A stretch of DNA of 64,000 nt from the NCBI GenBank assembly GCA_028826165.1, contig JAPDFW010000081.1, positions 930,001 to 994,000 on the forward strand, in the 5' to 3' direction. Positions 1-52,500 of this stretch are shown piece after piece. Below the pieces are notes generated by a model. It was not told the origin of the DNA, searched no databases, and was given only the letters and a program-made list of their open reading frames with translations. A program made the position numbers and the translations under genes. Position 1 is the first letter of the stretch. The number at the start of each line of letters is the position of its first letter. The DNA is from Anaeramoeba ignava BMAN (taxonomy: Eukaryota > Protista > Anaeramoebae).

Positions 1-2538
1 GGCAAAGACTGTGATTGAGTATTCCACCCCACCAATAAGATCGGTGGCATTATAAGTGAGCGAATCAACAGACAAACACTCGGCGCCAAGTGACTCGTTG
101 TAGAGGAAATAGAAGGCGACGAGACCTTCGCCAAGAGTCAGGTTATTCCAAGAGCAGTTGAATCCGAGAATGGCTCGTTCGCATGTAAGTCCTGTGATTT
201 GTCCCATTTTCGCGGCGATTATTTCCGAATTGCTTTCAAGTCCCGCCTCGCTTTCGAGACAATCCGAGGTTGCACAATATCGTACTTTTACAGTGTAGTT
301 TACATTTCCTGGAATATTTGAAAGTGTGCAGTCATAATCACTGGGATGTGTAACACTTGAGAAGTTTTGCCATGTAGTACCATCATCAGTTGATACAATT
401 ACACCTTGTGCAGCTGTGTTATCTGTAACGGTGAGACTGAATTCCTCAACTCCTGAAGTCGGAGTGACAATAGTAGGTGCTTTGAGACTTGTTGTGACGG
501 TGACTGTTGAAATACTTCCACACAATCCCGATTGATCGCAAGCAGTCACATTGACTTCGTATTGGGCATTCTCAATGGTTGCAACGAAAACAATTTGTGT
601 GGATGATGATTCGTTGAAACCACTGTCGGTATCGCTGAGACAGTTGTATGTGAGGTTGTATTTGTCGAGAGTTTGTCCGCCAGTGATCGCATCAAATGTG
701 CAGGACACATTAACAGCTTGAATAATTTGGCAATCTAAATTTTGGACTGGACCGAAACGGGTGTAAATTGATGAGATGTTTGAAAGACCTTTTTCAGTAT
801 CTGTGCAGCCTTCTGTGGAGCAAGCCCAGACTTCGATTGTGTAATTAGAGTTTGGAACCAAGTATGTTAATGATGTTGAAGTTTGATCGTTTGTGACGTT
901 TACAATGGATGAATTTCCTGCGCCGTTATCATAGGAAACTTGGTAAGTATAGATGTCGGTTGATTGGTCCACATTCGGCATTGTCCAACTGACGTCAATT
1001 TGACTGTCTGATGGTGAGCTTAGTTGGAGATCGCCAGGCGCATCGATGTATGTTGTGATGTCCACTTGCGAAGAAGCAGTGCCATCGACGTTGGTTGTTG
1101 TGTTATACGCATAAATCTGGATCTGATAGTCGTAATTTCCAAAGATTCCTGAGTAGTTGACTGAGCTGAAGTTCTCATAGAAGACTGAACCGCCATCGTA
1201 GACGTTGATCACCTCTGTGTAAGTTCCATTGTAAGAAATCATAAAGGCAATATCTGATGCAGTGATGTTGTCCCATGAACAAGAGAAATTGGAATACGAA
1301 GGAGTGCAGCTGAGACCAGTAACTTGTGGTGGGATTACAAGTCCATCATATACAGCAACTAATCCGTCGGCGGAGTCTTGAGGAACCGCGCCAAATACCC
1401 AATTTCCTATCACAACCGCTCCGTATCCAAGTTTTCCTGTTGCGCCTAAAGTATAGTTTTTCAGTTGAGTCTCCTCGTTCCATTGGGTATTATAATAGTA
1501 GGTGAACAAACTTCCTTGTGAACTGTTGTATCCAGGTCCTCCGATTGCCATTATATCCCCCGAAATTGCCAAACTCGATCCGAAATACAAGTATTCCTCA
1601 CTTTCTACAGGTCCTAATTCCTGCACACTGCTCCATGTCTCTGCGCTGAATCCCAAAACAAGCACTTTTCCTGCTCCAAGAAGTGAAGCTGTTGTGTTTT
1701 CATAGAACGGTGCTCCGACAATAACATTTGTGCCGTCAATCGCGACAGTTGCTCCAAAAGTGTCATTTGCTTTTCCGTTAGGATCGATAAAACTCTGGTT
1801 AACTGACCATGAGGAATCGAAGTAGTAAAACTGCACAGAACCTTGATCCGCAGCTGAGCCAGGATCGTATCCGGGAACTCCAACAACCGCCCAAGTGTCT
1901 GTTATCGCAACGCTGAATCCGAACCTTGAGTTATCATTGCTCTCATTTGTCCAGTACTCCAACTCTTCATAAGTGCCCGAATTGTTGTAAATCACAGCGA
2001 CTTGTCCTTGAGTTGTATATGTGAGATTTTTGGTTGGAATTCCGACAAGAGCATAATCTTTTCCCATTGCAACGCTCAATCCAAATTGTTCCAAAGTGGC
2101 TCCATTTGGATCAGCATATCTTTGAACAAAAGCCCAACCGCTAACGGTTTTATTAAAGAACTCAACATGTCCTTGTGACACATTTACACCTTCCGTTGAT
2201 CCTGGTGCTCCCACAATCATATCAATTCCGTAAACGGAAACACTTGATCCAAATCTATCTCCTGCAACAGGCGAATCAGAAACTAATTTTTGACTGAATT
2301 CCCATGTGTCTCCGTTCAGATCGTAAATGTAAACACTTCCTTCTAATGATGATTCTGATGGTGCTCCAACTATTAATTGATCTCCTGCTGCTGTTATACT
2401 GCTTCCAAATAATCCTGATGTTGAATTCGTTAATGTTGCTTCTTGTGTCCATTCAAATACTGCTCCAAGTGTTGTTGTAAATAACGCACACACAACAAAG
2501 AATGCTAAAAAATATTTTGTTTGAATTGTTTGTTTCAT
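1..2538 (-). CDS. Secreted/surface protein: signal peptide, ~7 FG-GAP repeats (beta-propeller), >=5 FN3-like domains; 3' end runs off the window
   Basis: Manual translation from ATG 2538: MKQTIQTKYFLAFFVVCALFTTTLGA, then repeats LFGSSITAAGDQLIVGAP, RFGSSVSVYGIDMIVGAP, QFGLSVAMGKDYALVGIP, RFGFSVAITDTWAVVGVP, TFGATVAIDGTNVIVGAP, YFGSSLAISGDIMAIGGP; FN3 motifs such as IDVSWTMP...YQVSY...LVPNSNYTIEVWAC. No intron or stop seen before the window edge, which is why it is absent from the ORF track. Confidence 0.85.
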   Translation of the reverse strand, partial: MKQTIQTKYFLAFFVVCALFTTTLGAVFEWTQEATLTNSTSGLFGSSITAAGDQLIVGAPSESSLEGSVYIYDLNGDTWEFSQKLVSDSPVAGDRFGSSVSVYGIDMIVGAPGSTEGVNVSQGHVEFFNKTVSGWAFVQRYADPNGATLEQFGLSVAMGKDYALVGIPTKNLTYTTQGQVAVIYNNSGTYEELEYWTNESNDNSRFGFSVAITDTWAVVGVPGYDPGSAADQGSVQFYYFDSSWSVNQSFIDPNGKANDTFGATVAIDGTNVIVGAPFYENTTASLLGAGKVLVLGFSAETWSSVQELGPVESEEYLYFGSSLAISGDIMAIGGPGYNSSQGSLFTYYYNTQWNEETQLKNYTLGATGKLGYGAVVIGNWVFGAVPQDSADGLVAVYDGLVIPPQVTGLSCTPSYSNFSCSWDNITASDIAFMISYNGTYTEVINVYDGGSVFYENFSSVNYSGIFGNYDYQIQIYAYNTTTNVDGTASSQVDITTYIDAPGDLQLSSPSDSQIDVSWTMPNVDQSTDIYTYQVSYDNGAGNSSIVNVTNDQTSTSLTYLVPNSNYTIEVWACSTEGCTDTEKGLSNISSIYTRFGPVQNLDCQIIQAVNVSCTFDAITGGQTLDKYNLTYNCLSDTDSGFNESSSTQIVFVATIENAQYEVNVTACDQSGLCGSISTVTVTTSLKAPTIVTPTSGVEEFSLTVTDNTAAQGVIVSTDDGTTWQNFSSVTHPSDYDCTLSNIPGNVNYTVKVRYCATSDCLESEAGLESNSEIIAAKMGQITGLTCERAILGFNCSWNNLTLGEGLVAFYFLYNESLGAECLSVDSLTYNATDLIGGVEYSITVFA

Positions 2539-2725
2539 TTAAAAAAAAAATTAAAAAAAAATAAAAAATGAAAAAAAAAAATTAAAAAAAATTAAATTAA
2601 ATTAAAGTGGTGAATTGAACTTTTTTGCTTTTTTTTTTTTAATTACTAATTATTCTCTTTTTTTTACTAATTTTTATTTTTATTTTTTTCTTTTTTCTTT
2701 TTTCATTTTTTTAATAATAATAATA

Positions 2726-5700
2726 ATGAATTTATTAAATCAAAATAATTCAATTACTTTTGGTGTTTCAACAATTTCTTTTCGAAGTCTTTGGCCTTTA
2801 AGTAATTATTTTGATTTAAATAATATAAATGAATATCAAACTCATTCTCCTCTTGGTCCTGATATTGTTCTTTGGGATATTCTCAATCAATCTCGCTCAA
2901 CAATTCTTCATTCAAATGATCAAGCTTGTTTTTGTTCTGCAGTTTCTCCTAATAATATTTTATTTGCTACAAGTTATTTTGGTGGAAATATTTTTATTTG
3001 GAAAAAATATTCAAAATTATTTGAATTAAAAGTTGAAAAGGATTATGTTATTGAACTTGGCTTTTCAAATGATTCTTCAAAACTTTTTGCTTGTACTAGA
3101 AATCGTCGAATCCCTAATCAACACCAGTTTTCTATTATTTATGTTTGGGATATTGATATTGAATCACAAAATTATAATTTGATTTATAAATTTACTGGTG
3201 ATCCAGTTACTGCTTGTTTTATTGATTCTTCTCATCTTTTTATTGGTGAATTTTGGAATAAAAAAAATAAATTATATATTGTTGATGTTTTAACTGGAAA
3301 AAAAACTTTCAAATTCAATTCAAAATGGAAAAATTATTCAGAAATAATGTGTTGTGATTTTTATTATCAAGAAAAAGTTTTAGCTATTGGTTTTTATAAT
3401 GGTGCTGTTATTTTATTTTTTCTAAATCAAAATCTAAATGAAAATCAAAATCAAAATCAAATTCAAAATCAAAATCAAAATGAAAATCAAAATGAAAATC
3501 AAATTGAAAATCAAAATCAAAATGAAAATTCAAAATCAAAATCAAAATCAAAATCAAATTCAAAATCAAAATCAAAATCAAAATCAAAATCAAAATCAAA
3601 TTCAAATTCAAAATCAAAATCAAAATCAAAATCAAAATCAAAATCAAATTCAAAATCAAATTGAAAATGAAAATGAAAATCAAAATCAAAATCAAAATCA
3701 AAAAATCAAAATCAAAATCAAAATCAAATTGAAAATGAAAATGAAAATCAAAATGAAAATGAAAATCAAAATCAAAATCAAAATCAAAATCAAAATCAAA
3801 ATCAAAATCAAAATCAAAATCAAAATCAAAATCAAAATCAAAATCAAAATCAAAATCAAAATCAAAATCAAAATCAAAATCAAAATCAAAATCAAAATCA
3901 AAATCAAAATCAAAATCAAAATCAAAATCAAAATCAAAATCAAATTCAAAATCAAAATCAAAATCAAAATCAAAATCAAATTGAAAATCAAATTCAAAAT
4001 CAAAATCAAAATCAAAATCAAAATCAAAATCAAAATCAAAATCAAAATCAAAATCAAAATCAAAATCAAAATCAAAATCAAAATCAAAATCAAAATCAAA
4101 ATCAAAATCAAAATCAAAATCAAAATCAAAATCAAAATCAAAATCAAAATCAAAATCAAAATCAAAATCAAAATAAAAATCAAATTCAAAATCAAAATCA
4201 AATTGAAAATCAAAATCAAAATCAAAATCAAAATCAAAATCAAAATAAAATTGAAAATCAAAATCAAAATCAAATTGAAAATCAAATTGAAAATCAAATT
4301 GAAAATCAAATTGAAAATCAAAATAAAAATAAAAATCAAATTGAAAATCAAAATCAAAATCAAAATGAAAATCAAAATCAAATTGAAAATCAAATTGAAA
4401 ATCAAAATCAAAATCAAAATCAAAATCAAATCGAAAATCAAAATGAAAATAAAAATTGAAAATGGTGAATTTTATCATTTGATTCAATCTCGAAAAATGG
4501 GTCCTATAAGAACATTAGTTTTTTCTAAATCAGGATTACTTTTTCTTCCAGCTGATCGTGGAAATTGTCTTGTTTATCATATTCATAATTTTTCTTGTAA
4601 TTATATTGATAAATACCAAGGTCCTCAAAATGGTGAAATTCGTGTACTTTTCCCAAGTTTATCAGGAAAAAATATTTGGATTAGTAATGAAAATGGACTT
4701 TATTTTATTAATATTTTTGATCAAATTGAATCAAATTTAAATTTATTAAATATCAATAATTCAAAACTTTTCCAAATATCTTTTCACACTCTTTCTTGTT
4801 GTGGACTTGCTTGTGATTCTGATTCTGAATTAATTTATTCAGGTGATCTTGCTGGAAATGTTTTTGTTTGGAATCCAAATAAATCACTTCTTCCACAATT
4901 TTCCAAAAAAATACAAGATACAAGTATAAGATGTATTTGTCTTTCAGAAAATAATTCAAAACTTGTTATTGGAACAATCGAAGGAATTATTTGGTATTGG
5001 AATTTAAAATTAAATCAAATTTCAAAACTTTTTTCATTAAAATGTCCAATTAATTGTATTAAATCATTTCATTTTTCAAATGAAGAATATATTTGTTGTG
5101 GAGATTTAACTGGAAATTTAATTTTTTGGAAAACTTCACAAATTAAACCTCAATCTTTTCAAATTCACAATACAGAAATTTGGAATTTAAGTTTTTCACC
5201 TTCAAATAAATTTATAATTACAGCAAGTGAAGATCAAACTTCAAAAATTTCTCAATTAAATTATCAATTCTTTTCAAATTCAAATTCAAATTCAAATTTA
5301 AAATCAAATTCAAAATCAAAATTTATTGAAAATATTCAAACATTAACAGGACATACAGCAGCTGTAACTTCATGTGATTGGGGAAATAATCAAAAAATCG
5401 AAATAGTTGCAACATGTTCTGATGATGCAACTATTAGACTTTATTCAGTTAAATATTCAAATTCCAATATTCCCACATTAGAACTTTCACAAATAATTTC
5501 AACAAATACTTTATATATTACTTATCTTAAATTTGATGAAATGATGCAAAATATAGTTGTTACAACAGAAGACGGATTTGTTGTTGCTTTTGAAATGGAA
5601 AACAAAAAAGAAATACTTCGAAAAAGATTTCATGGAGGAAGTGTTGAAGGACTTATTTATAATCCAAAAAATAAAAATTGGATTAGTTGTGGTTCTGATT

Positions 5701-20220: not shown

Positions 20221-23200
20221 TCAAAGTAATGCTTTTTCATCTTGATCATTATAGTCATTTAAACCATTTATTTGATTTGCATTTTCTAATTGTGAATGAT
20301 GAGAAATCAAATCAACTCTATCAATTTCATCAAAATCTTCTTGGTCATTTTCGAAATCACTAAAATCATCTTCACTTTGTTCATCCATTGCTTTTTGACC
20401 AGGAAGAACTTCATTATGAATATCCATATAATTCTCCAGACCAAGTTTAGTCAAAACAATTTTTTTCTGTTCAAAATAATCGTTTTCAGGATCATCAGGA
20501 AAAGTACTATGAAGAGCACTTTCAAACCCAAGAAGCGAAGATGTTGTTGTTGAGGAATCAACTACAATAACAGCCATTATTGCGTCTTGGAGGGTAATGT
20601 AATCGCGGAACATTAAGCGCGAATGAGCTTGTGCAAGTCTAATCAAACTTTCAAGCAATCTTAGTGTTGTTCTTGCTGCATTTCTAGTATCGGAATTTCT
20701 TTGGCGGTGGTAATATCTTTTGAGAACTTCTTTTGAATGCTTTAAAAATCTTGGTTGGAATTGATCCTTAATATACGAAATATAAGATTGTATTAATGAA
20801 AAGTTCCACAAGTTTTCCGTTAAGTTTTGTGATTTAATTTGTTTTGTTGGGGTTGAATGTTGGTTCCCTGTTATATTTCGTGTGTAATTATCTCTTTCTG
20901 TTAGAATAAATGAGGCTATTCGCCGATCCCAATCTGGGTTTTCGTTATCCATTAGCAATAATACTATATCAAATCTACTTAAAAGTGGACTTGCCATTGC
21001 AAGATTAACTGATAAGGATTGGGTTGGATCATATTTTCCTTTTGGATTAGCTGCTGCGATAACTGTTGTTCGTGTATTTAGTTTGCATACCATTCCTGCT
21101 TTTGCAACAGAAAGTGTTTGTTGTTCCATAGATTCATGAATTGTTCCACGATCATGTTCTCTTATGCAATCAAATTCATCAATACAACAAACACCACCAT
21201 CAGCAAGAACTAATGCTCCTGCTTCAAGAGACCTAAATTTAATATTTTAATATTTTAATATTTTAATATTTTATATTTTAATATTTTAATATTTTATTAT
21301 TTTAATATTTTAATTTTTGGATATTTTAATAATTTAATAATTTAATATTTTAATAATTTAATATTTTTAATATTTTAATATTTTAATAATTTAATATTTT
21401 AATATTTTAATATTTTAATATTTTAATATTTTAATAATTTAATATTTTAATATTTTAATATTTTTTAATATTTTAATATTTTAATATTTTAATATTTTAA
21501 TATTTTAATATTTTAATATTTTAATATTTTAATATTTTAATATTTTTTAATATTTTAATATTTTAATATTTTAATATTTTAATATTTTTTAATATTTTAA
21601 TATTTTAATATAAACCATTCTCCTCCAGATTCTTTAACAGCTGTTACTGTTAATCCAGCACTTGTTGATCCTATTCCAGTTGTTAATACTGATCTTGCAC
21701 TTAATTTTGAAGCATACTTTAAAATTTGTGAATTATGGGTTACAATAAAATTTGATAATAAAAATCTCTTGTTAGAATCAACATCAACTCCATAATAATT
21801 GCCATAGGATTCAGAATAAATTTCAAAACTAAACAAACGTGAATTTTGATTTCCTTTTCTTTTAATTAAATTTCTTGTTAATTTCCTTTGTTTATAATCT
21901 ATTTTGCTTGATAATATTTGGGTATCAATCTTAAGAAAATAAGAATTTTTTGATGGATTTTGGATCAAATAAAATGGTATTTGAAATTTTTCAGAAGAAA
22001 TTCCAAGACAATTGCAAATAAATTGAATATCGTCAATAAAAGATTTGTTTTTGTGTGAAATTATGGTAAATTTCTGATTTAATTTTGATATATGAATTCC
22101 AATTGAATCAATAACTCCTTGAAGAAATTGTTCTTGAATTTGTGAACAATTAAATTTATATCTTGAATCAATTCCAAAATATTTTTTTTGTTTTGCAAGT
22201 GAAAAACCGAAGCAATATGCAGGAATTTGACCAATTTCCTTTTTTGGGAATTTGATTGGAACTTTATACATAAAATATAAATTTTGATCTTTTTTTGGAA
22301 GTGAAAGAAATTTTTTAACTGTCATTTCAATTATATTCTTATTGTTTTTTTGTTGAAGACAAAGAATATGATTTCCATTTACAACAAAAGAAGAATAATC
22401 ATTTAAAAGAATTCTATATAATATTCCGAATCCTTTCGAAATTGAATTTACAATTCTTGGTTGAGAATCATCACCCATTAATAAATCACCAGGTTTTATA
22501 TATTGAATCATTTTATTTTTTCCATTAAACATAAGAATTTGGGTATTTTTAGCGAAACACTAAAGAAGAATAAATTGAATTTATTTCATTTTGATTTTCA
22601 ATTTCATTTTTATTTTGAATTTAATTTTAATTTTAAATTTTGATATTGAATTTGATATTGATATTGATTTTAATTTTGATTTTGAATTTGATTTTAATTT
22701 TGATTTTGAATTTGATTTTAATTTTGATTTTTGAATTTTGATTTTGATTTTTAATTTTTATTTTGATTTTTATTTTGATTTTGATTTTGATTTTTTGATT
22801 TTTATTTTTTTTAATTTTTGATTTTGATTTGATTTTAATTTTAATTTTAATTTTGATTTTTTGATTTTGAATTTACTTTTCCAGTTCCAGGATCTCCTAC
22901 AATTAATAAATGAGGTTCACCTCTAACCTTATGACCAGTTTCAGCATTAAATCTACTAACACCACCAACAAGTACCATTCCCAAAGCAAGCTTCACAATA
23001 GATAAACCATAAACTTGAGGACACATACTTGAGAGAATCAAATTTCGACCTGCAAGAGGATTTGGAAGATAACTTTCCCAAAACTCATGAAATTGGGTCT
23101 TAATTTCTTCTGAAAGATCAAGTGAGGAAAGTTGTGGATTATTAATGTGAACATGATTAGCTCGAATCACAATTTCAAGATCACACTTTGATTTTGGAAT

Positions 23201-24239
23201 CAAAGTTCTCCATCTTGCTAGAACAAGACCAGTAACAAAAATATCATCGCCTGCTTTGCACATATCTGCAAGATCATCCTCAAGAATAACTATCATTGAT
23301 CTTGGAACTGCTCCTACTTCAAGTTTTCCGAAATGCTCTTGTATTTTGATTTCTTGATAATCTTTGCAAAGTGTATGTGAATCACTCACTTCTTCAAAAG
23401 TTCGTGATCTGCAAGGCTTTCTTCTGTTTGATGGACATGTTTTGGGTGGCTCCATGAGATTGTATCGAGTTATATCTGCTGTTAATTGAAATCTATGTTT
23501 GCATTTCGCACATTCAAATGTTTTTTCTGATTCAAGCATTTTGACTGCGCTTACTCGAATCACTGTTCCTTCAAAACACATAAAAGATCCAATATCTGAT
23601 GATTTGGGAAGTGCGTTTTTTGTAATTTCTTGTGTTAGAGGTAAGTTTCCTATTTTCAATTTAAATTTTTATCCGATTTTAATTTTAATTTTTATCCGAT
23701 TTTAATTTTAATTTTTATTTAATTTTAATTTTAATTTTTTATCCGATTTTATAAATGAATTTTAATTTTTATTTTAATTTTAATTTTAAATTATTTTAAT
23801 TTTTTATCCGATTTTGATTTTAATTTTAATTTTGATTTTAATTTTAATTTGATTTAAATTGAATTAAAATTACCAATTCTAACATGACAATTTCTTTTAA
23901 TCGGAAATTCTGTTTTCATTTGTTCTTGAGCAGAAATAATACATTCATCAAAAATAGGAATCATTTTAGAAGAATGAGTAATTAATAAACCAGCAAGTTT
24001 TGGAGAAAAATTAGCAAGTTCAAGAAAACTAGAAATAATTAAAATAAATTAAAATTAAAAATTAAAATTTTAAATTTAAAAATATTTTACTTCACTTCAA
24101 GTGGATAATGTTCTGTTGGTGAACCTTCATTAAATAATAATTCAGAAATTGTTACATCACAACATTGTTGAAGAAATTGTAAAAAAATTTGAGAATATTT
24201 TATAATTTTATCAGGATTAAAATGATAATGATAATTCAT
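20221..24239 (-). CDS. MCM9: DNA helicase MCM9, intein-containing (5 exons; 3' end slightly uncertain)
   Basis: Zn finger CAKC...C...[35 protein letters not shown], then after the intein [30 protein letters not shown]|[50 protein letters not shown]. These match MCM9 rather than MCM2-7. Confidence 0.92.
21732..22559 (-). mobile_element. Intein (276 aa; VMA1-like Hint domain with degenerate LAGLIDADG endonuclease) in the MCM9 Walker A motif
   Basis: Starts [37 protein letters not shown] (block A); block [12 protein letters not shown]; ends [22 protein letters not shown] followed by Ser(+1). Removal restores GDPGTGK-SQILK. 828 nt, open frame. Confidence 0.95.
22560..22876 (-). other. Phase-0 spliceosomal intron (317 nt) exactly between the Walker A Lys codon and the intein Cys1 codon
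   Basis: GGA AAA|gtaaat...ttcttctttag|TGT TTC GCT; the interior is (AAAATC/AAAATT)-type repeat containing stops. Confidence 0.9.
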
Positions 24240-41600: not shown

Positions 41601-44600
41601 GAATATTCAGCAATTTCTTGTGCAAAAAGTGTGTCGAATCTCAATTTAAAGTCTGCTTCAATCACTTCTTTACTTCTTCCTGGAATAACAAGAAACTCAA
41701 TAAAGTAAAGTTCATCTAAATAGAATTTGCCGTAAAAATCATTTTGGAAAAGAATTTTGGAGAAAATGGAATAATAGCGAGAAATCATTCTTCCGTTATA
41801 ATTGGGAAGAATCAAATTGAAATGCTCAGGATAAAATTGAATTTTTGCAATACCAGCATAGCATAGCAATGAATCCAAGATATAAACATCATAGCTGGAA
41901 AAGTATTTTTTATCGAGGATTTTTTCTTTAATGAAATTATCTGAAATTGAATCTGAATCTGAATCTGAATAATTTACATATGAATTCGAATCTGGATCTG
42001 GATATGACTCTGAATATTCGAAAGGACTGTTACGATCAATATTTGTTGAGTTAGAAATTAATTCTATCGGGGTTTCTTGATATTCTTTTGGATCAAAATG
42101 TATTTCTGTTGGGAAACAAGATGATTTTATCGAAGACATCCAAAAATGGAATTTGAAAGCAACAAAAGTATTAAAGACGAGAGAAATTTCTTTGTGGGAT
42201 TTGAACTGGAGAAGGATTCGTGACTTTGGGTCTGAATTGACTTGAACAACAGCAATATAAGGGTTGTTTGGGTTGAGGAACATATTTTCGTCTTTGGAAT
42301 GATGAGATAAGAAAAGAACCTGATTTTTGTGCTTTGATTTAACAATAACTGAATTACGATCGAAATGGATCATTGACGGGATTAGTTTTTGTTTTTGGAT
42401 GCCGGTTTTTGAATACAAATTCGGGGAATTGACAACATGAGTCTTGAAAGAAGCAGACGTATTATGGAGTAACTCGTTCACTTTGGATTTGATGTCTTTT
42501 TCGGATAGTAATGTGCTCATTGTTGATAGATATTGACTTTTTGTCCCATTCCAATTGCGAATTGTTAATCTATTTTGCAATATTGTTGGTTCGGCACTTT
42601 TTGTGCTAAATTCAGCATAAATTTTCAGTGGAACCTTCTGCAAAATAAAATCTGACACTTCGTTTGAATTATTAATATCAAGACTAATCGTGTCTTTCTG
42701 AGAAGAAGTTCCTTCTTTTAAGGCATCATAAGGAAATTGAGGCAATAATTGTTTGTCTTCAAACAAATCAAAGCTGATGCTTTCATATTTCAAAGTGTTA
42801 GAATAAAAGCAGGCATTTATAAAGAAAAAGTGCCTGCAGTCTTGTTCCACATTGAATAAACACTGAGAATTGTGATTGTTTCTGGATGTATTGAATATTG
42901 CTCAAATCTGTAGTTGTGAGCAAGTCGGAAAATGTTTCAACTCGAATGATATTGCGGAATGAATAAAAATGGATGTGTCGTATCTCGGTTTTCCACGACA
43001 AAGTCACAACAGGAACATTTTGAGATTTGATGGTAAGATGTTCACGATCCAAATACAGAATTGCGGGTTGAAATTCTGAATTTGTTGATAAAACCATCAC
43101 AGAAAAAATTCCTTGTTTCTGTTGATAAACCCTTAAAGACAATGCCTCTCTTTCTTTTGATTCACCAATCACACTTCCCGAAACATCATATCTTTCGACA
43201 AAATCACCAGGATATGCTTGAAAGAGCATCAAGGTTTTGTAGAGAATGTATCTAGAGCGTTCTGAATCAGAAAGAAGGCGAATACTAAATGCCTCTTTTT
43301 GGTTGCGAAAAATTGAGAGTTTAGAAATTAATTTATTTTCACTACTTAAGACAAGCTCTATGGTTTTTTCTGAGTCTTGGAATGGGTTCTGAAGAATAAT
43401 AGCATTAGAACTGTCATATAATTTTACATTTTCTGTGTTTATATAAAGAACCCCGTTTTTGAATGAAATTCCTAGATATTCAAATCTTATTGGTAGCTCT
43501 ACATTTGCTCTTGCATAATTTCTTTTCACTTTTTCTTGTGCAGAAACTATTTCTGTGCTTTTTTCTAGTTGGACTAAAAGTTGTAATATCTTCTCTTGCT
43601 TTTCTTTGTTACTTAAAAGCTCTGGATCGTTTAAAATTGGATTTCCTGAAAATATTCGAAATTTTTGACATCCAGAAATAAAATTTTGTAAGTTTTCTTC
43701 AGGATTTAAGCTAGAAATATAAATTTTAATATTAAATTTTATATTAATATTTATATTTATATTTATATTTATATTTATATTTATATTTATATTTATATTT
43801 ATATTTATATTTATATTTATATTTATATTTATATTTATATTTATATTTATATTTATATTTATATTTATATTTATATTTAGATTTATATTTATATTTATAT
43901 TTATATTTATATTTATATTTATATTTATATTTATATTTATATTTATATTTATATTTATATTTATATTTATATTTATATTTATATTTATATTTATATTTAT
44001 ATTTATATTTATATTTATATTTATATATTTATATTTATATTTATATTTATATTTATATATTTATATTTATATTTATATTTATATTTATATTTATATTTAT
44101 ATTTATATTTATATTTATATTTATATTTATATTTATATTTATATTTATATTTATATTTATATTTTATATTTATATTTATATTTATATTTATATTTTATAT
44201 TTATATTTTATATTTATATTTATATTTATATTTATATTTATATTTATATTTTATATTTATATTTATATTTTTTATGTTTATATTTTATATTTATATTTTA
44301 TTTATATTTATATTTATATTTATATTTATATTTATTTTATATTTCATATATTTATATTTATATTTATATTTATATTTATATTTATATTTATATTTATATT
44401 TATATTTTATATTTATATATTTATATTTATATTTATATTTATATTTATATTTATTTATATTTATATTTTATGTTTATATTTATATTTATATTTATTTATA
44501 TTTATATTTATATTTTATTTTATATTTTTTATATTTTATATTTTATTTTATATTTATTTATATATTTATATTTATATTTATATTTATATTTTTATATTTA

Positions 44601-45934
44601 TATATTTATATTTATATTTTATATTTTATTTCATATAATTTATATTTTTATATTTATATTTATATATTTATATTTATATTTATATTTATATTTATATTTT
44701 TTTATATTTATATATTTATATTTATATTTATATTTTTTTATATTTATGTTTATATTTATTATTTATTTTTATTTTTTTTATATATTTATTTTTATTTTTA
44801 TATTTTATATTTATATTTTATATTTTATATTTATGTTTATTTTATATTTATATTTATGTTTATTATATTTTATATATTAATTTATATTTTATATTTATAT
44901 TTTATATTTTATATTTATATTTTATATTTATATTTATATTTATATTTTATATTTTATATATATTTATATTTATATTTATATTTTATTTTTATTTATATTT
45001 ATATATTTATATTTATATTTTATATTTTATATTTATATTATGTTTTATTTTTTATTATATTTATATTTATATTTATATTTATATTTATATTTATATTTTA
45101 TATTTATATTTATATTTATATTTTATATTTATTTTTTATATTTATATTTATATTATATTTATATTTATTTTATATTTTTATTTTTATTTTTAATATTTAT
45201 ATTTATATTTATATTTATATTTATATTTATATTTATTTATATTTATATTTATATTTATATTTATATTTATATTTATATTTATATTTATATTTATGTTTAT
45301 ATTTATATTTATAATTTATATTTTATATTTATATTTTATATTTATATTTATATTTATATTTATATTTATATTTATATTTATATTTATATTTATATTTATA
45401 TTTATATTTATATTTATATTTATATTTATATTTATATTTATATTTATATTTTATTTATATTTATATTTATTTTATATTTATATTTATATTTTATATTTAT
45501 ATTTATATTTATATTTATATTTATTTATATTTTATATATTTATATTTATATTTATATTTATATTTATATTTATATTTAGATTTATATTTATATTTAGATT
45601 TATATTTATATTTAGATTTATATTTATATTTAGATTTATATTTATATTTATATTTATATTTATATTTATATTTATATTTATATTTATATTTATATTTATA
45701 TTTATATTTATATTTATATTTATATTTATATTTATATTTATATTTATATTTATAAATAACGAACCCAAATGTGCATGAAGATGGCCAAATGAAATTTAAA
45801 ATTTTGCATAAGTTAATAGAAAAATCTAAATCTGTTGTTTCTTTTTGTAAATTTCCTGTTAGAAAATTATTTGTAAAAGAAGTTGGTGAAAATGTAAGAG
45901 TTGTATTTGGTTGTTCTTTATAAACTAATGTCAT
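38615..45934 (-). CDS. ~1770-aa protein: N-terminal calponin-homology-like domain plus many PH-like repeats (intron 43711..45764; +1 break near 42800)
   Basis: DFSINLCKILNFIWPSSC|...ENLQNFISGCQKF..LNDPELL resembles a CH domain; recurring PH-like C-terminal helices (FNSENESNEFI, FSNAKERDKFI, FKKMEERIMFF, FTSSEERQNFF, FKSLEERTNFF). Confidence 0.6.
43735..45752. repeat. ~2 kb (TTTATA)n intronic satellite
   Basis: Visible directly. Confidence 0.95.
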
Positions 45935-49579: not shown

Positions 49580-52500
49580 TTAGTTTATTCTTGAAATTAA
49601 TTCTTTGATAACTTCATGAAGTAATGAAACATTTGAAATATTTGAAAATGAAGGAAGATTAAAAACTTGTTGTTTATTATTCAAAAGAAATCTAATCAAA
49701 TAACTAAATGAAAATTTAAAATTTAAAATTTAAAATTTAAATAAAAATTTAAACAAGACTTTGTTACTTTTTCAAATCAATTGAATTTGTTTCATAAGAT
49801 CTTTCCAAAATAAAAAGAGCATTATTTAAATTAACACTTCTTTTGACAATATTTGAACAAACCTAATAAAAATTGAATTGAAATATTATTAAATTAAAAT
49901 ATTATTATTGAATTGAAATATTATTAAATTGAAAAATATTGAAATTATTAAATAAAATATTATTGAATTGAAATATTATTATTGAATTAAAATATTATTA
50001 TTGAATTAAAATATTATTATTGAATTGAAATATTATTATTGAATTTAAAATATTATTGAATTAAAATATTATTATTGAATTGAAATATTATTGAATTGAA
50101 ATATTATTATTGAATTGAAATATTATTATTGAATTGAAATATTATTGAATTAAAAATATTATATGAAATTATTGAATTTAATATGAAAAATTGAAATATT
50201 GAATTAAAATAAAAATATTATTATTGAATTAAATTATTGAATTATTTGAATTAAAAATATTATTGAATTGAAATATTATTATTGAATTGAAATATTATTG
50301 AATTGAAATATTATTGAATTAAAATATTATTATTGAATTGAAATATTATTGAATTGAAATATTATTATTGAATTGAAATATTATTGAATTGAAATATTAT
50401 TGAATTGAAATATTATTATTGAATTGAAATATTATTATTGAATTGAAAATTATTATTGAAATTGAAATATTATTATTGAATTGAAATATTATTGAATTAA
50501 AATATTATAAATATTATTATTATTGAATTGAAATTATTATTGAATTGAAAAATATTATTGAATTAAATATTATTATTGAATTAAAAATTATTGAATTGAA
50601 ATATTATTGAATTGAAATATTATTATTGAATTGAAATATTATTATTTGAATTGAAATATTATTGAATTGAAATATTATTTGAATTGAAATATTATTGAAT
50701 TGAAAAAAATATTATTATTATTGAATTAAAATATTATTGAATTGAAATATTATTATTGAATTAAAATTATTATTTTGAAATATTATTGAATTAAAATATT
50801 ATTGAATTGAAATATTATTATTGAAATTGAAATTGAAATATTATTAAATTGAAATATTATTATTGAATTGAAATATTATTATTTGTATTGAATTAAAATA
50901 TTATTATTATTGAATTGAAATTAAATATTATTGAATTATGAAATAATATTATTGAATTGAAATATTAAATAATATATTATTGAATTGAAATGTTATTATT
51001 GAATTGAAATATTATTATTGAATTGAAATATTATTATTGAATTGAAATATTATTGAATTGAAATATTATTATTGAATTGAAATATTATTGAATTAAAATA
51101 TTATTATTGAATTAAAAATATTATTGAATTGAAATATTATTGAATTGAAATATTATTGAATATTATTGGAATTAAAATATTATTGAATTGAAATATTATT
51201 ATTGAATTCAAAAAATATTATTGAAAATTGAAATATATTATTGAATTCAAAAATATTATTTATTAAATTGAAATATTATTGAATTAAAAATATTATTGAA
51301 TTGAAATATTATTGAAAATATTATTATTGAATTGAAATATTATTGAATTAAAATATTATTGAATTAAAATATTATTGATTTAAAAATTATTATTGAATTG
51401 AAATATTATTGAATTAAAAATATTATTGAATTAAAAATATTATTGAATTGAAATATTATTGAATTAAAATATTATTTTTGAAATATTATTATTGAATTGA
51501 AATATTATTAAATTGAAATATTATTATTGGAATTAAAATATTATTGAATTGAAATATTATTGAATTGAAATTATTATTAAATTTATTATTGAATTAAAAA
51601 TATTATTTTTGAATTGAAAATATTATTATTGAATTAAAAATTATTATTATTTTGAAATATTATTATTGGGGGAATTGAAATATTATTGGAATTAAAATAT
51701 TATTATTGAATTAAAATATTATTATTTTGAAAAATATATTGAATTAAAATATTATTATTTTGAAATATTATTGAATTAAAAATATTATTATTGAATTGAA
51801 ATATTATTGAATTGAAAAATATTAAATTGAAATAAATTATTGAATTGAAATATTATTATTGAATTGAAATATTATTATTGAATTAAAATATTATTATTGA
51901 ATTAAAATATTATTGAATTAAAATATTATTATTGAATTGAGATGTTATTGAATTGAAATATTATTGAATTGAAATATTATTGAATTGAAATAATATTGAA
52001 TTGAATTAAAATATTATTGAATTAAAATATTATTATTGAATTAAAATATTATTGAATTGAAATATTATTGAATTAAAATATTATTGTTGAACTGAAATAT
52101 TATTGAATTAAATTCAAATAATTTTCCTACATTTTCAAGCTCATAAGTACTCAAGTCATAATCAGAAACTGCACCTAATAATTCCAGTGCAATTTGTGGA
52201 TTTGATTGAATATGATCAACTCTTCCTGAATACAAAAACTTAATCAAAGCACGAAGAGTATAAACACTTCTTTGAGTTTTATCAGCATAAATTTCAGGAC
52301 CATTTTGCTCTGAGAAAATTTCCTGACCAAAACGTTTGCTATGAGCAGTCAAAATAGCTTTATGAGCACAAATAGCAACCTCTATTGCATTATGAGAATC
52401 AATTTCACTTTGCAAAGCACTTAAATTTTGGAAAAACATTGATTTGGGAACTTCAATCTCTGAGATTTCAATAGGAGAATTTGCTGTTGTTGTTTTAAAT

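Follow-up and report, generated by a model that had tools for sequence, protein, structure and literature searches.

The gene for the DNA helicase MCM9 in Anaeramoeba ignava BMAN carries a predicted spliceosomal intron and an intein at one and the same codon boundary. The gene lies on the minus strand of a 64,000-nucleotide (nt) stretch of DNA (hereafter the window; all positions are window coordinates). Its 317-nt intron separates the Lys codon of the ATP-binding loop (P-loop; Walker A motif GDPGTGK) from the Cys1 codon of the intein, with no base between intron and intein. The P-loop would thus be made whole by RNA splicing and then protein splicing at a single position. We consider it probable that this intron is a secondary, lineage-specific gain at a P-loop intron hot spot, beside an intein whose homing endonuclease has degenerated.

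MCM9 gene structure and the junction intron

The MCM9 gene is composed of the following parts (slashes within motifs mark junctions here and below).

24091-24239, minus strand: exon 1, with the ATG at 24239-24237; its junction to exon 2 is present in the transcript open reading frames (ORFs) P0001 and P0251 and in GenBank KAJ5072573.1
23874-24028, minus strand: exon 2, with the junctions EV/N and RIG/N present in P0001, P0251, and KAJ5072573.1
22877-23649, minus strand: exon 3, encoding the OB domain and the beginning of the AAA+ domain (Pfam MCM_OB, 4.8e-26; best PDB match MCM9)
22560-22876, minus strand: phase-0 GT-AG intron of 317 nt, between the P-loop Lys codon and the intein Cys1 codon
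22584-22874, no strand assigned: hexamer microsatellite, unit TTTGAT on the plus strand, about 47.5 copies (Tandem Repeats Finder)
21732-22559, minus strand: intein of 276 amino acids, class-1, PI-SceI/VMA1 type, with Cys1 (TGT) at 22559-22557 and the terminal His-Asn at 21737-21732
22098-22124, minus strand: degenerate second LAGLIDADG motif of the intein, LQGVIDSIG, with Ile at the last Asp of PI-SceI LAGLIDSDG
21616-21731, minus strand: C-extein part of the intein exon, from the +1 Ser (TCA, 21731-21729), SQILKY...GGEW
21233-21615, minus strand: next intron, phase 2, GTTTAT...TTTAG, with the junction W/SLEAGAL in KAJ5072573.1
20221-21232, minus strand: last MCM9 exon, encoding Walker B, arginine finger, and lid, stop codon included (Pfam MCM, 1.5e-44; MCM_lid, 6.9e-17)

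Exon 3 ends with GGA GAT CCT GGA ACT GGA AAA (22897-22877), the codons of GDPGTGK, and the Pfam MCM profile of the P-loop halts at its position 70 in this exon and restarts at 68 directly past the terminal His-Asn of the intein. The intervening intron has the termini GTAAAT...TTTAG and a strongly biased composition (199 A, 82 T, 31 C, and 5 G), and the microsatellite makes up 291 of its 317 nt. Within 22876-22560, the only GT is formed by the first two bases and the only AG by the last two. Read in frame, this segment reaches a stop after nine codons and contains many further stops, and 317 is not a multiple of 3. The acceptor AG is itself part of an in-frame TAG, so the frame cannot extend upstream of the Cys1 codon. 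Because both dinucleotides are unique, GT-AG splicing can excise the stop-rich stretch and spare the P-loop and Cys1 only at exactly these sites. With GT...AG ends that restore the frame and the conserved protein, this segment is predicted to be a U2-type intron.

The assignment of the gene relies on homology searches, in which the spliced model was searched exon by exon and the database proteins P0001, P0250, and P0017 served where a full-length protein was needed. Exon 3 and the last exon match MCM9 in the PDB (1.3e-82 and 1.7e-87, respectively) far better than MCM8 (1e-26 and 1.4e-36). Homologues carry the name MCM9, and PF26066, the N-terminal MCM9 family, is among the Pfam families precomputed for ORF P0001. 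By these matches, the gene is MCM9 and not MCM8 or one of MCM2-7. GenBank KAJ5072573.1 (P0250), annotated as "intein-containing DNA helicase mcm9 precursor", has the exon translations back to back, including GTGK/CFAK and THN/SQIL. With its intein and gene model already publicly available, the locus is a known one.

An earlier sequence-only reading of this DNA had described the GDPGTGK exon end, the 317-nt GT-AG intron, and the exon start at ag/TGT, and our results from sequence, Pfam, splice-site uniqueness, and KAJ5072573.1 agree with that anatomy. Its interpretation as RNA splicing followed by protein splicing at one codon boundary fits both the splice sites and the intein hallmarks, and we judge it to be right. 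In expression, the spliceosome would join AAA (Lys) to TGT (Cys1) and remove the 317-nt intron. The precursor protein would then excise the intein through attack by Cys1, cyclisation of the terminal Asn, and Ser+1 as acceptor, such that GDPGTGK would be ligated to SQILKY and the ATP-binding loop restored. The further suggestion that the intein starts a modular, shuffle-ready exon found no support, as the exon that begins with Cys1 extends over 116 nt of MCM9 beyond the C-junction and has a phase-2 end.

The MCM9 intein

The domain PF05203 (Hom_end_hint) spans residues 1-275 of the intein (E = 2e-22). Cys1 aligns with Cys1 of PI-SceI and is invariant across a 36-member family alignment (A1). 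The block B His is residue 64 (VNGNH) and is nearly invariant in A1, in which the family consensus is NxxH, not TxxH. The C-terminus reads FIVTHN/S, with the His-Asn in register with VVHN of PI-SceI and a Ser at +1. Removing the in-frame insert restores the host motif, which in Anaeramoeba flamelloides MCM9 reads GDPGTGKSQILKY without an insert; the C-extein is near-identical to this protein, which is itself intein-free. Cys1, the block B His, the His-Asn followed by Ser, and the restored host motif together identify the element, at the level of sequence, as a class-1 intein.

Judged by its motifs, the homing endonuclease is degenerate and does not qualify as an active LAGLIDADG enzyme; the residues needed for splicing are intact. 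PF05204 scores 19.2 bits, which is under the cut-off of 21.1, and no clear first LAGLIDADG motif was recognised in the MCM9 intein. Similar to PI-SceI of Saccharomyces cerevisiae, the MCM9 intein has the PF05203 fold, the same register of Cys1 and His-Asn, and a LAGLIDADG domain between the splicing halves. However, PI-SceI has 454 amino acids, resides in VMA1, and is followed by a +1 Cys, whereas the MCM9 intein has 276 amino acids, resides in the MCM9 P-loop, and is followed by a +1 Ser; no first LAGLIDADG motif can be recognised in it, and the second is without the catalytic Asp. The Walker A inteins of archaeal MCM helicases are likewise inserted after the P-loop Lys, but archaeal genes do not have spliceosomal introns, unlike A. 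ignava MCM9.

The MCM9 intein is one of about 45 paralogous inteins in A. ignava, of which about 26 are located behind P-loop GK codons. According to the main text of the published survey, 103 inteins were catalogued in this strain, including those of MCM3-9 (Gallot-Lavallee et al., 2023, PMC10710043), and the MCM9 intein is almost certainly among them. The same text describes "cluster 1" inteins that move between P-loops of unrelated proteins, and it reports protein splicing for only three other Anaeramoeba inteins (PMC10710043).

Introns at other intein junctions

Searching the genome with the MCM9 intein identified about 41 N-termini of the same family, every one of them Cys-initial, and a profile search added four more. 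Across about 62 N-junctions, two introns were found at 0 nt from Cys1 and two at -5 nt, and all four are in P-loops. The nearest upstream introns are as follows.

MCM9: 0 nt from Cys1
SRP receptor alpha: 0 nt from Cys1
A RecQ paralogue: -5 nt from Cys1
The second MCM, on the same contig as MCM9 (C71): -5 nt from Cys1
Three SMC genes: -20 to -23 nt from Cys1
XPB: -32 nt from Cys1
A dynein: -38 nt from Cys1
Remaining inteins of the family: none within at least ten codons

No intron was found within 30 nt downstream of 30 intein C-junctions, and N-junction introns were absent among about 27 inteins of other families (loci L078 and L095 are unclear).

The second exact case provides transcript support for this type of arrangement. 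In the gene for SRP receptor alpha (L002), an 89-nt GT-AG intron is located exactly at GVNGVGK/C. The transcript ORF P0252 is contiguous across this junction (...GVNGVGKCLAKNT...; GVNGVGK/CLAKNT), and it differs at a few residues from the genome-derived protein, which makes it independent of the annotation. An intron abutting an intein N-junction is therefore spliced as predicted in A. ignava.

Both -5 introns (L003 on C13 and L033 at C71:179437) have the donor G/GTAAR, which encodes Gly-Lys in frame. The codons GGT AAR of a P-loop match the consensus of a 5' splice site. In both of these genes, exon 1 alone already spells the full P-loop GK. We considered the Gly-Lys codons at both ends of these introns as a possible repair scar and rejected this idea, as they correspond to the G/GTAAR consensus donor in frame.

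P-loops as a probable intron hot spot

Introns at the same position are also found without inteins. Among the MCM paralogues of A. ignava, the K/S position is occupied as follows.

Intron and intein: MCM9 (0 nt) and the second MCM on C71 (-5 nt)
Intein only: C106; C67; C2 with its near-identical copy C17 (counted once)
Intron only, exactly at this position: C85
Neither: C80 and C66

The C85 paralogue (L055/L092, C85:188218-189000) is of the MCM2-7 type and has an intron without an intein at GVAK/S. It also has a second insert 23 codons further on, which starts with VHRDE and not with Cys; comparable non-Cys insert starts (IHRDE, LHHDQ, and IRGDQ) occur at several other loci. In VMA1 (L040 and L041, on C18 and C112), an intron is located exactly at the P-loop GCGK/T, where there is no intein; the VMA1 intein is found 60 nt further downstream, at the classical VYVG/C site.

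Genome-wide, the pattern GxxxxGK followed by GTAA has 61 matches, compared with 30 for a control pattern. With kinase glycine loops (Val next) set aside, about 18 of the 61 are clear intein-free NTPase P-loops, in which the GTAA implies a phase-0 intron behind the Lys codon. These P-loops belong to nine small GTPases, three GPPGTGK ATPases, Arf-like, SRP54-like, and DEAD-box-like genes, and others. Several hundred GK[ST] P-loops in the genome are uninterrupted. At a control site in small GTPases, DTAG/Q, none was followed by GTAA and 187 were contiguous. According to these pattern counts, about 2% of P-loops have an intron directly after the Lys codon, well above the prediction from a uniform spread. 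Among about 30 P-loop inteins, this baseline predicts about 0.7 introns exactly at the junction, and two were observed, such that the two exact cases are not clearly in excess. The enrichment of introns at intein junctions, for which the sequence-only reading had suggested a test, is thus evident relative to a uniform expectation but not clearly relative to the intron rate at P-loop Lys codons.

Putative antisense transcripts across the locus

Two MCM9 isoforms (i1 and i3) are represented by TransDecoder ORFs of assembled A. ignava transcripts, and they confirm the first two introns of the gene. Both lose the 317-nt intron through antisense-type junctions and not by joining K to C. At their three unusual junctions, the excised segments have CT...AC ends on the gene strand, which correspond to GT...AG on the plus strand, and the donor and acceptor contexts on the plus strand are good. 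The antisense introns predicted in this way are listed below.

22493-22884, plus strand: antisense intron of isoform i3, enclosing the whole sense intron (P0001 and P0251 junctions)
21977-22884, plus strand: antisense intron of isoform i1, with the alternative donor 21977 (P0001 and P0251 junctions)
21839-21935, plus strand: second antisense GT-AG intron, 97 nt (GTGAAT...CTTAAG), within the intein coding region, to which the junction NSYF/VCLV common to P0001 and P0251 maps unambiguously

We had considered P0001 as a faulty gene prediction, but this was dropped since P0001 is the TransDecoder ORF of a Trinity contig. The antisense-type isoforms are evidence neither for nor against the sense junction of MCM9.

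Origin of the junction intron

Two MCM9 loci of A. flamelloides (L067 and L068) have contiguous DNA over GDPGTGK/SQILKY, with neither intron nor intein, and the next MCM9 intron in that species is a few codons off the A. ignava position. Most simply, both elements would have been gained in the A. ignava line, and the absence of both from A. flamelloides MCM9 argues against an old intron. Regarding introns at GK/S in intein-free relatives, which the sequence-only reading had pointed to as informative, the A. flamelloides orthologues are uninterrupted, but the intein-free A. ignava paralogue on C85 does have an intron at K/S.

The finished tree of 34 inteins groups the RecQ intein of the -5 case with two intron-free RecQ inteins (97/91), the SRP receptor alpha intein with the IF2 intein (85/90), and the intein of the second MCM with a dynein intein (91/92). 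A single intron carried along in all four cases was rejected, as these three inteins pair with intron-free inteins. Most junction introns would then be separate gains, and a shared ancestry is possible for those of MCM9 and SRP receptor alpha. An earlier quick tree had grouped the MCM9 intein with two other MCM inteins; this grouping was not kept by the finished tree and we do not rely on it.

From these patterns, we infer an order of events in which the intron was probably gained second, at a position that would attract introns with or without an intein. The MCM9 intein would now be inherited as a passive passenger, because its homing endonuclease is degenerate. Introns and inteins each favour the GK boundary, which would account for the exact abutment, and the abutment does not speak for an unusual mode of intein movement. 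Among the scenarios of the sequence-only reading, a later gain of the intron fits best. Its corollary of an intein decoupled from homing is not warranted. On a donor allele, an intron between the flanking homologies would be copied along with the intein, so homing into empty alleles would not be hindered, and the claim is further weakened by the endonuclease being already degenerate.

Several points weigh against a secondary gain at a hot spot. No RNA read or transcript spans the K/C junction of MCM9, and both Trinity isoforms examined skip it; their odd junctions presumably stem from a spliced antisense RNA that an unstranded assembly combined with sense reads. The four introns within 5 nt of about 62 N-junctions exceed a uniform density (Poisson p of about 0.007), with about one intron per 500-600 coding nt as our own estimate from open-frame lengths. 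Given this excess and the zero of 30 at C-junctions, introns and inteins may be linked. The P-loop baseline of about 2% derives from pattern matches classed by eye and with GTAA donors only, was counted from the P-loop motif and GTAA alone, and has a denominator extrapolated from a pattern with an unintended extra T. Some of the P-loop introns of small GTPases may represent a few old gains multiplied by gene duplication. Finally, the MCM9 intein is poorly placed in the 34-intein tree, and a clade of the MCM9 and SRP receptor alpha inteins is not rejected (approximately unbiased, AU, test; p = 0.20).

An alternative that we regard as unlikely, although it survives best among the rivals, is that the intron is a by-product of DNA repair. 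LAGLIDADG endonucleases that target P-loops would cut P-loop DNA, and filler left by end joining, or by one-sided copying and end joining, would survive only if it could be spliced. Introns would thus be seeded at GK in empty genes and, upon ectopic copying of an intein, also at its N-junction or close to it. This process, if true, would explain together the bias to the N-side, where introns cluster at 0 and -5 nt of P-loop inteins with none near C-junctions, and the intron-only alleles at the identical site in paralogues and other P-loop genes, with none at the DTAG/Q control. The main text of the survey reports introns at or near the intein sites of intein-free paralogues, all of them from A. 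ignava in the case of the MCMs, and it notes end-joining repair for Anaeramoeba (PMC10710043). The lack of both elements in A. flamelloides MCM9 is also consistent with this process. However, no scar in the sequence has survived, as the MCM9 intron is a hexamer microsatellite and the Gly-Lys repeat at the -5 introns is expected of any phase-1 intron in a Gly codon with a G/GTAAR donor. Moreover, the activity and target preference of the endonucleases are putative, and introns at P-loop inteins do not significantly exceed the P-loop baseline.

It is quite improbable that the MCM9 and SRP receptor alpha introns go back to a single gain, in which an ancestral P-loop intein acquired an intron at its N-junction and took it along when it moved between these unrelated genes. 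The whole segment between the flanking homologies is copied in homing, and P-loop homology is available upstream of the intron. Within the genome, the MCM9 intein does match the SRP receptor alpha intein best (39% identity, 127 bits; the next match has 103 bits), both introns are in phase 0 exactly at K/C, and the AU test does not reject the corresponding clade. Nevertheless, the best tree pairs the SRP receptor alpha intein with IF2 and not with MCM9, and the two introns have no common sequence and differ in length (317 and 89 nt). Deriving the -5 cases from the 0 cases would also require a simultaneous shift of both splice sites.

An older intron, behind whose acceptor the intein landed by a route other than homing, was the first scenario of the sequence-only reading, and we consider it very improbable. 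The intron exactly at K/S in the intein-free C85 paralogue and those at the same position of many P-loop genes are in line with this scenario. In contrast, the nearest empty-site orthologues in A. flamelloides are intron-free, and three A. ignava MCM paralogues have the intein without the intron. A resident intron would split the endonuclease target and remove the upstream homology, such that insertion would need an illegitimate join exactly at ag/TGT. If introns blocked entry in this way, they should be depleted at P-loop inteins, but 2 of about 30 were observed, which is no depletion. As for a wrong gene model, with the sense mRNA spliced otherwise, the gene broken, or the N-terminal part expressed alone, the missing sense transcript over K/C among the assembled isoforms examined and the overlapping antisense spliced RNA would fit, but it is highly unlikely given that GT and AG are unique and lie exactly at both codon boundaries with matching phases, that the catalytic motifs of MCM9 and the intein are all intact, and that the same architecture is verified by a transcript in SRP receptor alpha.

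Other features of the genome and the window

Near-identical copies of intein-bearing genes were found on different contigs (C2/C17, C18/C112, and C35/C113/C92) and may represent recent duplications or uncollapsed haplotypes. Frameshifts or stops are present in the dynein copy on C92 and in the SMC intein on C137 (L016). Within the window, positions 1-2000 have 44% G+C, compared with about 20% for the genome, and no ORF of more than 90 codons; an Rfam search of positions 1-3000 returned no match. Two 2-kb micro- or minisatellite arrays, one of (TTATAT)n with about 335 copies and one with a unit of 16-35 nt, are located at 43732-45754 and 49872-52113 and account for the intervals with 3-9% G+C.

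Relation to known intron-intein sites

For the same organism, the main text of the survey describes introns at or near intein insertion sites that lack the intein and proposes that they act as barriers to homing (PMC10710043). Those introns occupy intein-free sites, whereas in MCM9 and the other genes described here both elements are found at one boundary, in two cases exactly and in two at -5 nt. At site d of PRP8 in Bathycoccus, alleles have either an intein or a spliceosomal intron at one codon, and the two are mutually exclusive (Monier et al., 2013, PMC3749507). As in A. ignava MCM9, the intron and the intein of Bathycoccus PRP8 share their target codon in a conserved nuclear gene. However, the PRP8 intron is young, polymorphic, and in phase 1, whereas the MCM9 intron is in phase 0 and in series with the intein on one allele. 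We found no description of an intron and an intein coexisting at one codon boundary in the accessible literature, which for PMC10710043 comprises the main text. The coexistence and its recurrence appear to be undescribed.

A broader hypothesis, which we put forward as doubtful, is that P-loop-hopping intein endonucleases seed spliceosomal introns at GK, both in empty genes and beside inteins. If true, this seeding would span the empty MCM paralogue, VMA1, small GTPases, and AAA+ ATPases, as well as MCM9, SRP receptor alpha, RecQ, and the second MCM. The state with both elements is also one point mutation away from removal of the intein by the spliceosome, as a change of the terminal Asn codon from AAT to AAG makes an AG at the C-junction. 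Such an intein-to-intron route, if true, would explain introns at vacated intein sites. If intein endonucleases cause the hot spot, intron gain by break repair could be tested directly in A. ignava, and so could the way in which inteins are lost. If the hot spot has another cause, MCM9 would be a curiosity, in which one ATP-binding loop needs two unrelated splicing systems.

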